Below are positions 5,794 to 15,522 of a DNA stretch of 52,229 nucleotides, piece by piece. Positions within the stretch are counted from its first letter, which is position 1. Every line of letters begins with the position of its first letter. The position numbers were made by a program, and so were the translations under genes. The notes beneath the pieces were generated by a model. The model was given only the letters and a program-made list of their open reading frames with translations, was not told the origin of the DNA and made no database searches. The stretch is from Ministeria vibrans ATCC 50519. Its lineage: Eukaryota > Protista > Filasterea. The stretch covers positions 1 through 52,229 of the forward strand of contig CALSCP010002206.1 of the NCBI GenBank assembly GCA_943704425.1, given 5' to 3'.

Positions 5794-8700
5794 TCAGAGG
5801 ATCACACACACTTTGGATTCTTCTGGGTCGCCCTTTGGAGGACTGTTGACAGAACCGAGGGGTGGCAGGGGCACACGATCACCTCGCTCGACAGGAGGCT
5901 CGCCGAAGCGAGTGTCACTGTTGCACACAATAAGATGTGTCATGGTCACGTTGGGGAGCGTATCAACGAGCTGTTCCGTTTCAGTTACGGGTGTTTCGCT
6001 GAAGGAGAGTCGTGTTGAAAAGGGAAAGCCCTAAAAAAAAAAACAAAAAAAAAAAAAAAAAAAAAAAAAAAATAGTGACAAAGTGATGGAGAAATAAACA
6101 AGGCAAGGAGACACACACACAAAATTAGGCGAGGAGGTTTTTAGGAGATCGAATAATCGTTCACGTACCAGTGGACGAGTGTCGGGGTAGCGCATGCCCT
6201 TTGCACCACAAAAGCTGAGCGAGCCACAGTGAGTGCGAGCGTTCAGAGTGTCGATGGCGTTGTCGGTGAAAAAGATAAAAAGTCGGTAGTGGGAGCCGGG
6301 ACGAGTGCCACGCGGCAGGAGCAAGTTTGGAGGCAAACCACACTCACAGAAGCCTGGCGAGACGGTAACGCTGTGCTCCTGTTGGTCAAGCTGATCTTGA
6401 GGACGACGGCGAATCACGGAGGAGTGACGGTCGCGGCGTGAGAAGACGGTGTGCGAGGCGCCCGCAGGAATGTCAACGCGACACTTGTCCATTTCGATCC
6501 AGGCGAGACGATCGTTGGTCTGGTGGAGGAGCGCGAGGAAGAGACGCGCTGTCAAGGAAAGTGGCAGAGCAAGGTCGGAGGCGCCGGGAACGCGGGCGAC
6601 ACGGACGTGCCAAACAAAAGGATCGTGATCAAGGTGCGCAATTTCGAGTTCGCGTTGGGGTTCGCCCAAGGTGGTGTGGAGGACATCCGAGGCAAAGTCG
6701 TTGCGCGCCCAGTCGTCGGTGTCGTTGTTCCATGCGTCGAAACCTTCGGGTGGAGCAATATTGCTGGTGGAGAGCACAATGAGATCACGGGGGCGCACGG
6801 TGACAGGAGGACGCAAACCTGGAATGGAGTCGAGATCGAGGGGTGGCAGAGTGTGATTGACAAGGCGTGCGCCAAAAGTATCAATGTGTTTGTGCCAGCG
6901 CCAGAAGATGGGATCACGCAGAGCGGTGCGAGTGGAAAGCATTGCTCCACCAAAGAGGTTGTGACCGTGGTTGTGGAGATTGCCGTAGAGGGCGCGCCAG
7001 CGGGAGACGGATGGCTCGAGGACATTGCCGAGGAGATTTGCAGTGATAGGTGCACTGTCGTATGGAACACGACCAATGATGCCCGTGTCGATGCTGTGGT
7101 GAAGAGCATCGCGCCACTGTCGCAACTGAATGATGTGAGTGGGAGAGAAGGCGAACCCTTTGGGGCGGGGTCGCATGCGACGGTTGAGACGGTGCTGGTA
7201 GAAGAGATCGCCAAGATGGAGACCGTCAGTGTCGGTCTCATGGTAGTCCCAGGGCACGACGGGGCCCAGGCCGCACGCGAGGCGTTCGCAGTCGTAACGC
7301 GCGAGCATTTGCTGGTGCATGTAAAGAAAAAACTCGCCTTTGCGCTCAAGATGAGGTGCATCTTCTTCGGCACGTGAGCCATACACAATGTGCCAGTGCA
7401 TATGGTGCCAGTTGAGACCCGCATCGCAGCGGTAGTAGTCGACATCCTGCTCGAGAGGCGCCTGTGGATTGGGCGGCGAGCGGCTCAATAGAGCCCCACG
7501 ACCCAACGCGCGCTCTTCCTCGGTGAGCGGACGAGGCTCGGGCAGCGCAAGGCCGCTTGCGCGAGCCTCTGTCGACGACATGATGAATTTGTTGACGGCG
7601 TGCTGAACGAGAGCGGCATTGCGCACCCGTCCTGTGACAAGCAGGGACAGTGCATACTCTAGCCCGGCGCGAGCACTCCCGCCCGTCACAGCCGCATTTG
7701 CAATTGCTCGCTCGAGTGCGAGTGCACGGTCCAATTGTACATCGTCAAACTCACTAAACGCGCCGCTCTCACTGTCCTCGACCTTCGACGACTCATCATC
7801 GTCCTCCTCCTCATCAAAGAACGTCTGGAAGATCTCGTCGACTACTTTGTGTAGACTTTCAGCACTCGCAGACTCGTCCATGAGTTCCCCGCTCTGGAGC
7901 ATTGTGAGAAACTGCTTGCGAAGGGTTACCAGAGAGGCGTCGGGCACACCATGGACAAGACCAAGCTGAGCAAGAGGCCCGTCGACTGGGTGATCGCTGA
8001 CGTGGCCAGCGCTCGATGCAAGGCGGATCAGTTGCGCCGACTGTTGACTCTGCGCGAGTGGCTCCTCAACGTGAGTGGCGCTTGTAGTTGATGTCTCGCT
8101 GTCGTTTGCGAGTGCAATAAGATGCAGGATTTTAAGACGTTGGAGTGAGAGCTGAGCGTAGAGAAGAGCGCGCACGGGAGCCCAATGGTCGTGGGAAATG
8201 AGCGAGAGAGCATCATTGACAAGAGAGAGTGCGCGCATAAGTGACTCTGCGTCCAGAAGTGCTGGCGCATGTGCAGATGTGTGTAAATCAGAGGTTGCAC
8301 TGGTGGATGTGCGGCGGGAGTGGTGAGTGGAATGACGGAGTGGAGAAGAGAGCGCGTTCGCGAGGATGAGAGCAAAGTAGACTGCGTGTGTGCGTGTGGT
8401 GAGATCCGATGTGGTGGCAATGGAGTAGAGGAGAGCGCGAGCGGGTTCGAAGGAGGGCGCAGGAGAACCAGCAAGCGCTATGAACTCGCCTGTTTGAGTA
8501 TCATAAGAGGGCACAGATGATAATGAAGAAGAAGAAGAAACGGTGGGGAAGAGCGGATGGGGGTCTGCAGATGCGACGGTGACTATGGCGGGTTCGGGGG
8601 TGACGAGGGTCCCCTGTGGAGTGTGGAGGGCCACGGTGATGCGGTACGTGCCTGGGGCGGCAAAGTAGAAGCCATGAGCGCCGTACGAGAGTGGTAGGAG

Positions 8701-10557
8701 CACCGAGTGACGGTTTGCGCCCGACTGGATGGCAGACGGTGTGGCGGCTTTGAGACGCAGTGGCTGCTGAGCGACACTGCTCTCAATCATCGACTCGAAG
8801 CGCACTGTGTTGGTGGTGGTGGTGGAATTTGAAGTCCGGTCTTCATCGTCATTGTTGTTGTTGTTGGTGGTGGTGGTGGTAGTGGTGGAGTTAATGTTGG
8901 GAATGTGTGTGATGAGGATGACGAGGGAGTCGTCGTTGAGCGAAGGAACTGAAGGCAGATCGAGCGCATGTCGAGTGTGTGTGTTGCGCACGCGCAGACT
9001 CAGTAGGATGGGCTCGCCTTGAGCGCACGGAGACACGGGAGCACGAAGACGAAGTTGAGCACGATGGGAGAGAGACGGGGAGGGCGGGGGAAGAATCGGG
9101 GGCAGGGATGAAGTAGTGGCGTCGGCAGCCCAGGTAGAGGCGGGCGCTCCTGGCTGGAGCCAAGCACGACGGCCGTGGCGCAGAAAGCGCAGTTCGGCGG
9201 GGGCGAATTGCCATTGAAAGTCGGTGAAGAAGGCGCCGGGCGTGTGACGTTGCTGATCGTAGCGCCAGGGGTAGTTCATGAAAGTGAGTTGAGTTGAGGC
9301 CGGCTGCGCCATCGCATTGTGGGTCTTGTGAGGGCTCCACGAGTGCTGCAGGTTGAGTGTGTGGCCGAGTTCGTGGACAAATGTGTGGAGCAGGTGGCGT
9401 CGGGCCATGTCTGTCTCGAGGGTTGTGTAAGGGGTGTTGCCGTCGCGTGTGACGCGGTGAGCGGCACGCAGGAGAGGGTGGTCGAGAAAAATGGCAAAGC
9501 CGAGACGGCGTTTGTTGTCGAACATTGTGCCGGCGATCCGTGCGTTGCGATGGCGCGACGCGAGCAACGCCCACACGTGCCATTGCGAGTCGTTGAAGAG
9601 CACGTCGGCTGCACTAGTAGTAGTACTAGTAGTAGTGTGTCCCTCGGTGCGAGCAGTGGTGGTGTTGTGGCCGACTTGGCGCTGCACGGTCACTGCGCCA
9701 GTCTTAATGCGCGAGTGAAAGTGCTCGAGCATTGACTGATGCAGCTCGGCGTCGGTCCAGTCTGAGGTGGGATCGGGGTCTTCGAGCGAGTTGCAGTGCT
9801 CTGTGTCGATAACCAGGTCGATACCTGCAGCGGCCAGCACGTCTTGCACCCCAAGTGTGGTGTGGTGGCGACCTGAGGTGGACGTTGCCCAGGGCAACTC
9901 GAGCGGAAGGTGCGCATCGTGATCGACTTCGAGAAGAATTCGACGGAAAAAGGGACTTTTAAAGCGGCAGTGCCACTCGGTGGAGGTACCATTGCCAGCC
10001 GACGTAAAGATGGCGGTGGCACGGCCGCTTGCGGCGGCAGGCGCAAACGAGAGCGTCAAGAGACCGAGGGGCGCGTAGGCAGCGTCAATCAATGCCGCGT
10101 CGCCACTCAAGAGAGCCTGATCGCCATCTTCGAGCGCGTAGCACTGACCCATCACAATACCATTGGCGGGTGCGTAGGGCGGCAAAGCGGGCGCGGGCTG
10201 CACTGCGCTATCACGACGCGCAAAAGGAACAATCCACGATGTGGGGGGCGACGAGGGTGTACTCAGGACGTCGGCGCTCATCATAAATAGCGGTGCGGAC
10301 GCAACGCCAGCGCCCAAAGACGCATGCTGGATGGTGTCCACGTCGACACGCAGTATTATGAGCTGGCCGTCGTCAGACTCGCCGTGATAGACGCCCGAGA
10401 GGGAAGACGACGACGCGGTTGCTAGGCGACCGCGTTGTTGTTGCGTTGCCAGCGACGACGACGATCGTCCAGCCTTTGCAGGTTGACGCTTCTCTTTAAG
10501 TGTCGACATTTGGCGGGTTGCCAACGGGACTGAGGTTGACGGAGAAGAGGACGACAT
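5794..10557 (-). CDS. ~1541-aa fusion of a metzincin-like zinc metallopeptidase and an arthropod-type hemocyanin/prophenoloxidase (type-3 copper) module, ending in a CaaX box
   Basis: Exon 10557-6169, GT-AG intron 6168-6031, exon 6030-5794. Protease: HELGHTLNLQH (HExxHxxxxxH) and a Met-turn-like FMNYP. CuA: LNWHHMHWH and RKGEFFLYMHQQMLARYDCERL. CuB: YGNLHNHGHN and LRDPIFWRWHKHID. Hemocyanin_C-like: WIEMDK, FCECGLPPNLLLPRG, SFCG..YPDTRPL|GFPF. Ends ...EESKVCVIL*. Confidence 0.88.
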
Positions 10558-10929: not shown

Positions 10930-13900
10930 CTACACCCCACTGCCATCACGAAACAACAGAATGTCGCCATCGTTGCGCGTCTCGTCCCAGTCATTCCAGA
11001 TGCGCCCCACTAGCAGCCCTTGCCACCTGTTCTTCATCCGACGACACAGCTCCACCGCACTAATCACCGTCTCGCCAGGACGGAACGCCTTCTTCTGCGC
11101 TCCAAGTGCCTCCACCAGCATCCGCGTCATCTGCGTCTCGTCATTCCATGCAAATGCCGACGCGCTGTTCAGTGAGCTGGCCATCATCTGTCGCGCATAG
11201 CCCGGCACGGGCTTGACACTCGCGCGCATCGTCAGGTCCCCATCCGCACTCACCAGTGCCCCCGAATTGCAGAAGTCACACACCACCAGAATGTTGCATC
11301 CGCGCCAGTGGGCCTGCTCCTGTAACACCCCCGCCAGTGTCTTCAAACTAAACCCCGACACAAGATCGTCGATCCAGCGTGCGTCGCTGAGAATCAGTCC
11401 ACGGCTTCGGTCCTCCGCACCATGCCCAATCAGGTGGACCACCAGCAACGACGCCTTGGACTTGCCACACGTCGCGCTGAGCTTCGCTGCAGCCTCCGCA
11501 ATAGTATCCATGGTGACTCTCGCAGTGGTGACTTGGTCTGTGACCGTCTCGACAGCAAACTTGCGGTCCTCCCACAGTGTCTTGAGCTTCGACACACTCT
11601 TAAGAACACCAGGTAAATCAGGACAGTTCGCCAACTGCAGGTTGCTTGACGATTGGTACCGACTCACACCCACAATCAGTGCAGCTGCGTGCGTGTACGC
11701 CGATGTTCCTCCAGCACCTACAAAGAAAACATAAACAATTGTCAGATTTAAACTGAATAATATTTCAGATTTGACCTGCTTGATTGCACCACCACAGCTC
11801 AAGACGTTCGTTGCACTGTCGTTCGCCAGCGTGTCCCATCAACTCCAGATTCACCCGCCCCACCTCACGGTGCTCCTCAGGTGCCCCCGCCACATGCTCA
11901 GCCTCAAACAACGGTCGCGTCGGGTCAAACGGGTGCGCTGGCACGACCACTGCTCTCCCTCCACGCCATCCCCACCGCAGCGACACAGTCGACGAGCACA
12001 CCCGCTCAATCAGCGCATCCACCGTGTCACGCACATTCTCCGCAGGTGTGTCCGCATACAGTTCCACACGCACAAACGCCTCGCCCGTGTTCAGTCGCAG
12101 TCGCACCGGCACCATCCCATTGCCCTTCATCAGAAGCACATTCGTGCACCGCTGAGTCGCTTGGATCGCCGCATTCCCCACACTCTCCCGCCACAGTGCA
12201 ACCACCAGCAAGTGGAAAGTCGCCAGTGACACCGGCAACACCGCACCACCCACCATCTGGTACAGGAACAACTGCGCCGGTCGATCAACAGCTTGCTCGA
12301 CAAACGGTGCGTCGTCGGGCAGCAGCATCGGCACAAGAAGTCGGTCGTCGTGTCGGAACACCAGACTCAGGTGCTCAAGGGTGCGCAGGAACGCCGCAGG
12401 ATCAACCACGTCGGCACCCGCCAACAGTGGCTGTGTCTTGGCCAGTGGTGCAGCTGCCTCCCACACAAGCCACTGTGCCACGTCAAATGGGAATCCGGCT
12501 TCGGGACGTTGTCGTGTCGCGTCCAAAGCAGTCAACAGACGCACGGTGCGATTGAGATCCTTTGCACACCCTGCCTCCTCCACCTGCGCCAGCATTCCGC
12601 GCGCCCGCTCGCTCTTCGCCCGTCCCCATCGTGCCATCACCACCGAACACAGCAGTTCAAGCGCCGCAATCAGTCGAGGCACATCAAACACAACCATGTC
12701 GGAGTCAGCGAGCGTCGCACGGTCCACACGACTCACCAGAATGTCCGCAGAGTTCTCCAGGTACGGAATCACTCCATCGTGCAGTGCCGTCGTGTCGGGC
12801 ATCAGGTCGCCCAGTGTGATCTGTGGCGCGTCGTTGAGCTCGAGTGTTGGCAACTCACGCACTGGGCACATCAGCTGGACGTTGCCCATCCGCGCCCATC
12901 GTCCAATCAGGTCCTGTGCACACACATACTCAAGCGGCACAGGTCGTGGACGCACCGCCGAGTGCAGTGCCGTGCTGACCGCAGCGAGTCCCAGGCCCTT
13001 GGCACTGCCCACCTGGAAGAAGGGCACACTCGGTGTCGATGGCGGTCGGATGAGGTGCGGCCCAAGCACAGGCACAACGAGACGACGCATCTCGCGCGCC
13101 ACCAGTTGCAGCAGATCGCACGGAACGGTGTCGTCAGTGAACGTGTCGATGTGTGTGCCCACAATGAGAACGCGAAAGTGCGATGACTGCGTGGTGGGCA
13201 CTTGGTGCGCGATGAGGTGCGCCCATTTCGACACCGTGTCGTACTGGCGTTGAGCCGCAAGAAGACCACTAGCCATGGCGGACAGGTCAAAGACGACGAC
13301 GTAGACGGACTCGTTGCCCATGAACAGTGCAGGAAGCGAGTCAAACATCGACTCACCTAAACACATCAACGAGAACGGATGTCAGAAGAAGAAAAAGAAA
13401 TAGATTGGGCTTTGTGCAATATACGAACCTGCAAAGTCAAACGAGTCCATGTCAACGTGCTCTTCGCGCAGTTCCGTCTCCAGCACAGACTGCACAATCT
13501 CGAGGGTGTCTGATGTGGCAGCGATGGTGGGTGTGGGCGTTGGTGGTGGTGGAGAGGGAGCGACACTGGGTGTAGGGGGTGAAAGGTTCGACACAGTCTT
13601 CTTCACTTCGGTTGATGGTCCTGCCTCGTCAGTTGAATCGACGTCGTCGTGTTTCTCCTCTGCGATATCCTCCTCTTCCTCCACCGTCTCCATTGCCACC
13701 ATGCGCTCGCCAATGAGACTGGCCAAATGAAACTCCTCCTGCGGCACCGCCTTGAAGTAGCCCGTCTCGCCATCAAAGACTATTCGCATGCGGTGCATTC
13801 GAGTGGCGACTGAGCGGTCGTCTTTGCCGGGCAGTGTATCGTCTTGCAGTGCCGCAAGCAGTGCTGTCTTGCCTGCCTCGGTTGCACCCAGAAACAGCAG

Positions 13901-15522
13901 TTTGATCGAGTGCGAGATGACACACCCGCGTGCCATTGCCGAAAGGAACGCCTTCTTGTGACTCGACTCAGTGGGCAGCTCACTAAAACAACAATATAGA
14001 GAAACGGGATAGGTAATTGTGTGTGAAGGAAATGATTGTTGTTGTGTGTGCTGAGTGTACGGAATGAGGTCAGTGATGGGAAAGTGCTCTGTGGTGTTGT
14101 CTGTAAAGTGCACGATGAGTGTTTGGTGGTCCGTTGAGAATTCCAGTTTGCAGAGTGTTCTACAGAGTAAAACAATAATAAGAAAGAAATTTGTTTTGAC
14201 GTTCATACTTTGAGTTGAGTTTCAGAGGAAATGAGTTGATCTGCAGTCCCTTTGCAATGGTCCACACTTTGATTGTCGTGTCGTGCGATCCACTGAAGAG
14301 TGTTGTGCCGTCAGATGAAAAGTGGACTGTTTTGACATAACTACGAGTGAAATGTGTGAAAAGGGAATTGAATAGACTGACGTCATACTGTGAATGTTCA
14401 GTGAAAGTGAAGAGACACTCTCCCGTCTGACTGTCCCACACTTTCACTGTCTTGTCGTATGATCCACTCACTATTGTAGTTCCGTCGGGTGAGAATTCGG
14501 CTGATGTGACGCGACTGAAATCAAAAGAAGAGTCAAAATGATTTTGGAGTTCCTTTCGTATTACTCTGAGTGTCCAGTGAATGTGCGGATTATCTTTCCA
14601 GTGTCAAACCAATGCAGTGCAATGGTTTTGTCAGTTGAAGCAGTGAGCACTTGTTTGCCATCAAATGAAAATGAAATGGAGTTGATGTAATCCCTAAACG
14701 AAACAGAAACAGGAATGAGACTCAAAGGAATATGAAGAAATGTTCTTACGAATGAGCACGCTCAAAGGATCGCACAAACTGTGCAGAGTGAGTGTCCCAC
14801 ACACTCAGTCCATACTTCTTTTGTCCAAGAATGTGCAATCCATTGGGGGAAAATGACACTGCACATTGAAAACTGGAAAAGATATTCAACAAATGAAATC
14901 ACACTTCAAATGACAATCACTTACAATGGTTCGCATTGAATGGTGTGTTCGCACAGTCCACTCACAAGTGACCACACTCGAATGGTTTTGTCATCTGAAC
15001 CACTCAGTGCTTTGGTTCCATCAGAGGAAATGTCCACTGAATTAACCCACCTATCAAACGGAAATCAGTCCAATGGCACTCATTGCAAATGGTAAATCGT
15101 ACTTTGAATGTCCTTCCAGAATGAACAGACACGTTCCAGTGCGAATATCCCACACTCGGACTGTCTGGTCAAACGATCCACTCACTATCTTCGTTCCATC
15201 AGACGACACTTTGAGAGACGGCACCCCGCTGAAAACACACTCAAGTCAGAAAACAATCCACAAACATACCCAATTCTTACTTTGTGTGTCCTTTGAGTCT
15301 CTTGACGCATTTCTGCTCAGTGAGTGACCACAGCACAATCTCCTTCACCACTGAAGCAAAGACCACATCCCCCCTCACTGTCAGACTATAAACATCGTTC
15401 TTGTCCTTCACCGTCGCAATGGAGTGCGCAATGTGCTGTGTTCCCTCTTCGCACTTCCGAAAGAGCGCAACTTCATTCTTATGCACAAATGCGACTGTCT
15501 TTCCCTTCTGAGCAAATGCCAT
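10930..15522 (-). CDS. ~1341-aa Roco-family protein: WD40 repeats, Roc GTPase, COR-like region and caspase-like (peptidase C14) domain
   Basis: Exons 15522-15281, 15228-15103, 15050-14925, 14872-14750, 14693-14565, 14514-14389, 14340-14209, 14159-14061, 13982-13429, 13356-11776, 11717-10930 give 4026 nt in one frame with all GT-AG introns. WD40: [46 protein letters not shown]. Roc: [17 protein letters not shown]|[19 protein letters not shown]14-like: [28 protein letters not shown]. The 5' end could extend further upstream. Confidence 0.85.

Follow-up and report, generated by a model that had tools for sequence, protein, structure and literature searches.

We analysed a 52,229-nucleotide (nt) stretch of the Ministeria vibrans ATCC 50519 genome (assembly GCA_943704425.1, contig CALSCP010002206.1, positions 1 to 52,229 of the forward strand), hereafter called the window. 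Reading of the sequence placed on its minus strand, from 15522 to 10930, a gene of 11 exons and 10 introns with a predicted product of 1341 amino acids (aa). The coding length is 4026 nt, that is, 1341 codons and a stop, from the ATG at 15522-15520 to the TAG at 10932-10930. All ten introns are of the GT-AG type and 52-78 nt in size, and their phases are consistent, being 2 for introns 1-8 and 1 for introns 9 and 10. An earlier note on this DNA had described positions 10930-13982 as a Roco GTPase with a caspase-like protease as its C-terminal output; this span proved to be precisely the last three exons (13982..13429, 13356..11776, and 11717..10930). Upstream of them lie the exons of a WD40 β-propeller, and the whole gene reads WD40, Roc, COR, and Peptidase_C14 (C14) from the N- to the C-terminus. 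All searches were run exon by exon, on the separate exons of this gene. Its features are as follows.

Exon 1, 15522..15281, minus strand: 242 nt, starts with the ATG and ends in phase 2; N-terminal beginning of the β-propeller, with weak β-propeller Pfam matches.
Exon 2, 15228..15103, minus strand: phase 2 to phase 2; one WD40 blade.
Exon 3, 15050..14925, minus strand: phase 2 to phase 2; one WD40 blade.
Exon 4, 14872..14750, minus strand: phase 2 to phase 2; one WD40 blade, without a PF00400 match.
Exon 5, 14693..14565, minus strand: phase 2 to phase 2; one WD40 blade.
Exon 6, 14514..14389, minus strand: phase 2 to phase 2; one WD40 blade.
Exon 7, 14340..14209, minus strand: phase 2 to phase 2; one WD40 blade.
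Exon 8, 14159..14061, minus strand: phase 2 to phase 2; without a PF00400 match.
Exon 9, 13982..13429, minus strand: N-terminal half of the Roc GTPase.
Intron 9, 13428..13357, minus strand: 72 nt, GT-AG, phase 1; takes out an in-frame TGA at 13384-13382.
Exon 10, first part, 13356..12962, minus strand: C-terminal half of Roc.
Exon 10, second part, 12961..11776, minus strand: COR-A and COR-B, about residues 132-526 of the exon.
Intron 10, 11775..11718, minus strand: 58 nt, GT-AG, phase 1; lies between COR and the protease and holds the unspliced stop TGA 11767-11765.
Exon 11, 11717..10930, minus strand: Peptidase_C14 domain, 261 aa and the TAG stop.

Exon 11 matched Pfam Peptidase_C14 (PF00656) with 29.7 bits, above the cut-off of 21.4. 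Its AlphaFold2 model had a predicted local distance difference test (pLDDT) score of 88.9 and a predicted template modelling (pTM) score of 0.91, and comparison of the model with the PDB returned 254 matches with E ≤ 0.001; all 36 of the matches listed were caspase-fold proteins. The best matching structures were Geobacter GSU0716 (3bij), MALT1, caspases-8, -9, -3, and -7, and Yca1, at an identity of 12-15%. The caspase fold on which the earlier note had made its reading depend was thus recovered, and the two motifs named there were located in exon 11, IGHG at 11430-11419 and DFCNSG, given as about 11261-11280, at 11277-11260. The residues concerned are the following.

Catalytic His98, 11424-11422, minus strand: after the strand of residues 90-96 (β3).
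Asp147, 11277-11275, minus strand: two residues ahead of Cys149.
Catalytic Cys149, 11271-11269, minus strand: after the strand of residues 141-147 (β4).

Among 29 sequences reaching down to 25% identity, Gly97, His98, Gly99, and Asp147 were invariant and Cys149 was at least 90% conserved. A phmmer search of the PDB with the single sequence of exon 11 gave nothing meaningful, whereas a profile search did find matches: the C14 family profile aligned with Arabidopsis metacaspase-4 (6w8s; E 6.7e-6), GHG pairing with HYSGHG and DFCNSG with DSCHSG. The nearest ESM Atlas clusters were bacterial Peptidase_C14 families, and the best sequence matches were metacaspases and bacterial C14 proteins and not caspases. 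At the active site, DFCNSG stands where animal caspases have QACxG; compared with the metacaspase pattern D-x-C-H-S-G, Asp147 is kept and Asn stands in place of His (C-N-S-G). Because of this active site, the metacaspase-4 alignment, and the bacterial C14 clusters, the domain is judged from its sequence to be metacaspase/orthocaspase-like and not an animal-type caspase. Hence, the "caspase-like protease" of the earlier note held as to the caspase fold and the intact, conserved His/Cys dyad, and had to be amended as to type. Taking sequence and model together, we concluded that exon 11 encodes a real C14 peptidase domain of clan CD, a predicted protease. The invariant Asp147 ahead of the Cys, which corresponds to an S1 residue of metacaspases and MALT1, suggests a P1 preference for Arg/Lys rather than Asp. 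The position matching the first S1 Asp of metacaspase-4 (ELRGCVNDV) is occupied by a near-invariant Ser40.

This Ser at one acidic S1 position and a paralog (L004) that has DCGNGG instead of DFCNSG would fit a C14 domain that is a non-catalytic pseudoprotease, acting as a scaffold or dimerization module. Such a role appears very improbable, given the conservation of His98 and Cys149, the canonical placement of the dyad residues after β3 and β4 in the model, and a ratio of nonsynonymous to synonymous divergence (Ka/Ks) of 0.30 for C14, described below. The reading retained here is a probably catalytic C14 domain.

The Roc GTPase is divided between exons 9 and 10. The P-loop (G1) GATEAGKT lies in exon 9 at 13888..13865, as does G3 DFAG at 13438..13429, with its Gly codon split by intron 9; Thr60 of this exon is the probable switch I Thr, and the sequence at the exon 9/10 junction resembles a Roc switch II. 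Exon 10 supplies G4 THID (13159..13148) and G5 SAK (13006..12998), and the motifs G1, G3, G4, and G5 of the gene are thus intact. Gly32, Ala36, Gly37, Lys38, Asp182, Phe183, and Ala184 of exon 9 were invariant in the 14 paralogs aligned, and Val115, Gly116, and Ser117 of exon 10 were invariant in the paralog alignment. Between β2 and β3, at about 13714..13487, Roc carries a low-complexity acidic/Pro-rich insert. The insert is 70-110 aa long, hypervariable, and Ser/Thr/Pro- or acid-rich, and keeps its position in 14/14 aligned paralogs; it could serve as a regulated or disordered linker or as a target of modification.

Pfam Roc (PF08477) was the best or co-best GTPase family for both halves of the domain, at 15.6-20.7 bits against a cut-off of 27. 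Exon 9 matched positions 1-41 of the model (15.6-19.9 bits, below the cut-off), and the C-terminal part of Roc in paralogs matched positions 56-119 (19 bits); in the gene, the domain is interrupted by intron 9 and by the insert of about 70-110 aa. When the exon-10 paralog profile was compared with PDB sequences, the sole match was the Roc domain of LRRK2 (9c76_A, E 0.4), in which VIVGTHxD corresponds to VILVGTHLD. The Roc domain of the earlier note was thus borne out by the four motifs and the LRRK2 match, but not by a Pfam score above the cut-off.

COR was identified by structure. The AlphaFold2 model of exon 10, built on 18 paralogs, had block-mean pLDDT values of about 70-95 over residues 140-526 (10-residue blocks). 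With this model, the top 33 Foldseek matches were all Roco proteins, first C. tepidum LRR-Roc-COR, RocCOR, and COR structures and then LRRK1 and LRRK2 (best E 2e-6), and Roco proteins alone also made up the first 31 rows of the ranking by Z score. VIA-align gave Z 14.3 to C. tepidum 3dpu_B (RocCOR; 291 residues aligned) and Z 13.7 to 3dpt_A (COR alone; 281/298 residues aligned); LRRK1 and LRRK2 scored Z 8-10, and the next unrelated folds scored Z ≤ 6.6 over short segments only. The label "COR-like" that the earlier note had given to exon 10, which is without Pfam support, was confirmed in this way by Foldseek and VIA-align. The C-terminal half of Roc shares exon 10 with COR, which puts COR directly C-terminal of Roc in the same chain. 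As judged from motifs and model, the gene product is a real Roco protein, and by analogy GTP binding and hydrolysis and COR-mediated dimerization of its Roc-COR part are predicted.

The N-terminal exons encode the putative sensor. PF00400 (WD40) exceeded its cut-off of 27 bits in five of the six single-repeat exons, with 34.8, 31.2, 29.3, 44.0, and 31.6 bits, and the per-exon Pfam search gave no PF00400 match for exons 4 and 8. Exons 1-8 together would form about 7-8 propeller blades. No STAND domain (NB-ARC or NACHT) was detected by Pfam in any exon of the gene.

The protease is joined to the remainder of the protein through intron 10. The earlier note had proposed this intron at 11775..11718 in phase 1, and its borders were exact, with the donor GCA G/GT CAA (GT at 11775-11774) and the acceptor TTTGTAG/GT GCT (AG at 11719-11718). 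The junction codon, composed of G (11776) and GT (11717-11716), encodes Gly. Also as described there, the frame without splicing ends near 11765, at the TGA 11767-11765. This in-frame stop, 9 nt into the proposed intron, would fit two genes, one encoding WD40-Roc-COR and ending at the TGA (11765), and the other an independent small C14 gene. Five lines of evidence make this arrangement hardly credible. In the C14 exon, the first Met comes only after strand β1, leaving no usable start codon; exons 10 and 11 are just 58 nt apart; the GT-AG phase-1 intron is common to paralogs; the order and spacing of the parts are kept at about 30 loci; and the corresponding junction in a metagenomic relative (P0009, on contig L037) lies within a single uninterrupted frame.

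At the approximately 30 loci, the Roc, COR, and C14 parts have the same order and strand and are mostly about 60-110 nt, at most about 320 nt, apart. A duplicate of the gene on C894 has intron 10 at the same position and in the same phase, with 2 substitutions in 58 nt, and C2822 also has an intron of this phase and position between COR and C14. In P0009/L037, the COR-B motif (FLVPCTLPDEA...VPVGLFHQLVVRLL), the WW motif, and C14 follow each other in one frame with no intron, and the linker between COR and C14 is as long as the splice of the window gene would make it. The alignment of the exon-10 paralog profile with P0009 by hhalign was weak (E 0.04, probability 1.3%) and was used for the colinear COR-B motif only. 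Contig L037 also has a frameshift at 1348-1360, precisely at the catalytic Cys codon (ADF / CNSGSL), which is either an assembly error or the mark of a pseudogene. On another metagenomic contig, L040, the query protein is COR-like; a WD40 gene precedes its gene, and a gene of 272 aa starts 57 nt after it. The order and the labels of the two outer genes are those of the gene calls. The long open frames of C985 and C2822 were considered as intron-free fusions and rejected, as they contain in-frame GT-AG introns without stops.

Divergence from the C894 duplicate was also estimated. Ks was 0.084-0.093 and Ka was 0.016-0.028, giving Ka/Ks ratios of 0.19 for COR and 0.30 for C14. Both exons are thus kept as coding sequence and, on this comparison, are under purifying selection. 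These results indicated that WD40, Roc, COR, and C14 are encoded as one chain of about 1341 aa and that the domains are joined in one gene, as the earlier note had held, through a conserved phase-1 intron.

The gene is not a single case. In the genome compared for paralogs (29.7 Mb, 2860 contigs), exon 10 and exon 11 each matched about 40 loci, and exon 9 matched at least 35. At least 30 of the genes in this genome are colinear Roc-COR-C14 genes, including the one in the window. Roc-COR-C14, the core of the architecture that the earlier note suggested looking for, recurs in the genome, and the lone gene assumed there became one of at least 30 paralogs. WD40 exons were found upstream of at least the paralog on C2659 and are probably also present upstream of that on C985. 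Among most paralogs, identity is 45-65% in the core (Roc, COR, and C14) and 25-36%, where detectable, in exon 1.

Two copies are much closer to the window gene. The region C2434:6661-11256, compared with 10933-15522 of the window, is 90% identical in exon 1, 98% in the N-terminal half of Roc and the C-terminal part of COR, and 70% in C14; exon 1 copies upstream of the other paralogs are only 25-36% identical. For the copy at C894:82752-85080, identity is 97% over COR and 94% over C14. Because identity is patchy within the C2434 and C894 copies, the sequences suggest gene conversion or exon exchange. The family also includes recent duplicates that evolve under purifying selection (C894), and the loci on C85, C2586, and C1352 look like pseudogenes in sequence.

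Several members differ in the parts that surround Roc-COR. On C2371 (L034:4916-9217, plus strand), a long TPR_12/TPR_10 array (436 bits) follows a COR region, and after it come another COR-B-like piece and a C14 exon. On C2822 (L033:1558-4431, plus strand), a 958-aa open frame combines a P-loop region resembling that of Roc (20.7 bits) with NB-ARC, which exceeded its cut-off at 34.9 bits, and with DUF7779. About 40 nt beyond the end of this frame, and in the same orientation, begins the Roc exon of one of the Roc-COR-C14 paralogs; the frame is an NLR-like neighbour of that paralog or else belongs with it to one giant double-NTPase gene. At the Roc-COR loci on C986 (L010) and C491 (L015), the 1.5 kb that follow COR contained no C14 exon, and the Roc-COR locus on C437 had no C14 match in the genome-wide searches. 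These three may have alternative C-terminal outputs; on C491, L015:3135-3542 is a helical segment with a weak coiled-coil match (DUF7365).

Outside its own genome, the family is nearly invisible, as judged from sequence searches in collections from which records of that genome itself may be missing. A search of 1.84 billion representatives with the C14 exon gave 17 hits, of which the closest were short fragments; most of those looked up were metagenomic. For the COR exon, a word search of 5.8 billion clusters, restricted to those of permitted length, turned up 8 hits, all of them metagenomic and unnamed. Nearly all of the outside relatives are unnamed short open reading frames of metagenome or run assemblies, and a pattern scan of metagenomes added one distant locus (L038). 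The three outside contigs that were traced (L037, L039, and L040) belong to one ENA metagenome series (SCHR19-1_SAMN094060xx_METAG). L039 is 96% identical to the COR exon of the window, and therefore the same or a sister organism is present in the SCHR19-1 samples. A protein of Trematomus bernacchii (P0010, XP_033992442.1, 2552 aa) contains 19 stretches about 50% identical to residues 56-81 of the C14 exon; this likeness may be a coincidence of repeats or low complexity, or contamination.

Downstream of the gene by about 370 nt and on the same strand, the window has a 1508-aa open frame (6031-10557, minus strand) with matches to Hemocyanin_M (107.9 bits), Hemocyanin_C, and tyrosinase. The region of this frame that precedes them contains an HExxH motif (HELGHTLNLQH) and has weak metzincin matches.

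Here, we propose with moderate confidence that the protein is a single-chain sensor-switch-effector built on Roc-COR with a C14 output, likely an immune or cell-death receptor. The WD40 propeller would recognize a ligand or else a self protein that is guarded or modified. As in C. tepidum Roco and LRRK2, this would shift the nucleotide state of Roc-COR and its dimerization or oligomerization through COR. This change would free the C14 domains or bring them together, leading to substrate cleavage, and the output would be cell death or a defence response, in analogy to the bacterial AP-GTPase-COR-caspase conflict proteins and to NLR/Apaf-1 and caspase systems. The earlier note had regarded the protein as a GTP-switched protease, effectively a one-chain apoptosome- or inflammasome-like receptor, and such a description may be apt. 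A wider proposal, that the at least 30 genes form an immune or death repertoire based on Roco proteins and not on STAND ATPases, is more tentative, and we hold it at somewhat less than an even chance. In such a repertoire, Roc-COR would control the attached metacaspase-like protease as a counterpart of the apoptosome or inflammasome, and it would have been inherited from bacterial AP-GTPases or assembled independently.

The weakest step in the proposed mechanism is that from COR dimerization to protease activation. The closest relatives of the domain, metacaspases and bacterial C14 proteins, do not necessarily depend on dimerization for activity. Metacaspases are typically monomeric and are activated by Ca2+ or autoprocessing, and proximity-induced activation of the C14 domain is for this reason uncertain. 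Several other points also weigh against the receptor model. The evidence for an immune or death role, which is an argument by analogy, consists of the architecture and the family expansion. The evidence for the splice of intron 10 is comparative. Among single exons and paralog open frames, Pfam Roc stayed below its cut-off (15.6-20.7 against 27 bits) and no Pfam COR match was obtained. The C-terminal half of Roc, modelled apart from exon 9, had a pLDDT below 50. Finally, the Ser at one of the two acidic S1 positions of metacaspases makes the suggested P1 preference for Arg/Lys tentative.

The same architecture could instead belong to a regulatory or signalling protease, either resembling the MALT1 paracaspase or acting like a metacaspase in proteostasis or development, with the Roco part providing localization or timing. 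MALT1 is among the best structural matches of exon 11, and the characterized Rocos of eukaryotes, among them LRRK2 and Dictyostelium GbpC, function in signalling and trafficking and not in immunity (PMC4104024). However, having at least 30 paralogs is more usual for receptors that take part in genetic conflict than for housekeeping signalling proteins. In addition, the N-terminal exons (25-36% identity) are far more diverged than the core (45-65%), and the family shows patchwork identity, contains pseudogenes, and has members with TPR or NB-ARC close by. On balance, a signalling protease seems unlikely, although it is the likeliest alternative to the receptor.

The evidence on the sensor exons bears on another possibility, in which the proteins would serve allorecognition or incompatibility between conspecific cells, like the fungal HET/NLR WD40 proteins, and not defence against pathogens. 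The presence of one WD40 repeat per symmetric exon and the patchwork suggestive of gene conversion recall the fungal NWD/HET-E loci, a resemblance on which this explanation is based. The present evidence fits pathogen sensing equally, and we consider allorecognition improbable. The immune or cell-death receptor thus remains the reading that we prefer.

What Roc-COR controls is a long-standing question that has been studied almost solely through the LRRK2 kinase. A Roco with a protease output would offer a direct and easily scored readout of Roc-COR switching, such as cleavage, or death and survival in yeast. If the proposal is true, the logic of sensor, NTPase switch, and caspase-fold effector extends to a GTPase-based family of eukaryotic receptors, and the family has a bearing on the assembly of cell-death and immune machineries from bacterial parts. 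Furthermore, WD40 repeats encoded one per exon and patchwork identity suggest a testable mode of repertoire diversification.

Among known systems, bacterial proteins offer a close parallel in architecture. Kaur, Iyer, Burroughs, and Aravind (2021, eLife 10:e70394; PMC8195603) described bacterial LRR-AP-GTPase(Roc)-COR proteins in which at least 24 kinds of domain, caspase, trypsin, and TIR among them, occupy the C-terminal position. Up to 11 paralogs occur per genome, and a counter-invader or cell-death role was predicted (PMC8195603). Because caspase effectors are listed there, the logic of a Roco-caspase has already been published, in bacteria and computationally only; the bacterial AP-GTPase-COR-caspase systems are themselves computational predictions. 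Like them, the window gene encodes a single chain in which a repeat sensor is combined with Roc, COR, and an effector at the C-terminus, and it has many paralogs. Unlike them, it is eukaryotic, has introns, carries a WD40 propeller and not N-terminal LRRs, and has a large low-complexity insert in Roc. No close bacterial relative of the C14 exon was detected in the search of 1.84 billion representatives (17 hits).

The window protein shares the Roc-COR tandem with LRRK1/LRRK2, DAPK1, MFHAS1, Dictyostelium Roco1-11, and C. tepidum Roco, and its G4 motif is THxD as in LRRK2. WD40 repeats are present in LRRK2 and some Dictyostelium Rocos (PMC11378527). In contrast to known eukaryotic Rocos, it has no kinase, death domain, or LRR, its output is C14, and its WD40 part is N-terminal and not C-terminal; its Roc-COR sequence is also strongly diverged from known Rocos, with Pfam Roc under the cut-off and COR undetected. 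Reviews of eukaryotic Rocos name kinase, death, CARD, TIR, LRR, TPR, and WD40 domains and no caspase-fold domain (PMC4104024).

LRR-ROCO proteins of brown algae and other members of the stramenopile-alveolate-rhizarian (SAR) group are candidate immune receptors, and their "group 3" has a C-terminal peptidase, IPR009003 (Front Plant Sci 2024, PMC11378527). The window family resembles them in having expanded in a eukaryote that is not an animal and in its repeat exons, which lend themselves to shuffling; some of the SAR proteins likewise have a C-terminal peptidase. It differs in having a WD40 and not an LRR sensor, and C14 in nearly every member in place of IPR009003, which we take to be the trypsin-like serine-protease superfamily and not C14.

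As for the effector, the metacaspases and orthocaspases of C14B (metacaspase-4, 6w8s; Yca1, 4f6o; GSU0716, 3bij) are the best relatives of exon 11 in both sequence and structure. Unlike them, the window C14 is fused to a Roco, has Ser for the Asp of L-x-G-C-x-N-D, and shows no visible prodomain or type I/II features.

The literature searches found no paper on a eukaryotic Roc-COR-C14 protein or family. What is new here is a Roco with a new combination of sensor and effector, in an unusually large eukaryotic family. With Apaf-1/caspase-9, NLR inflammasomes, fungal NLRs, and bacterial NACHT/NB-ARC-caspase fusions it has in common a repeat sensor (WD40 in Apaf-1), an NTP switch, and a caspase-fold effector. 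Unlike in these STAND platforms, the switch is a Ras-like GTPase with COR, and the protease lies in the same chain and is not recruited through CARD. The window protein is thus NLR- or apoptosome-like in its logic and not a member of the STAND class.

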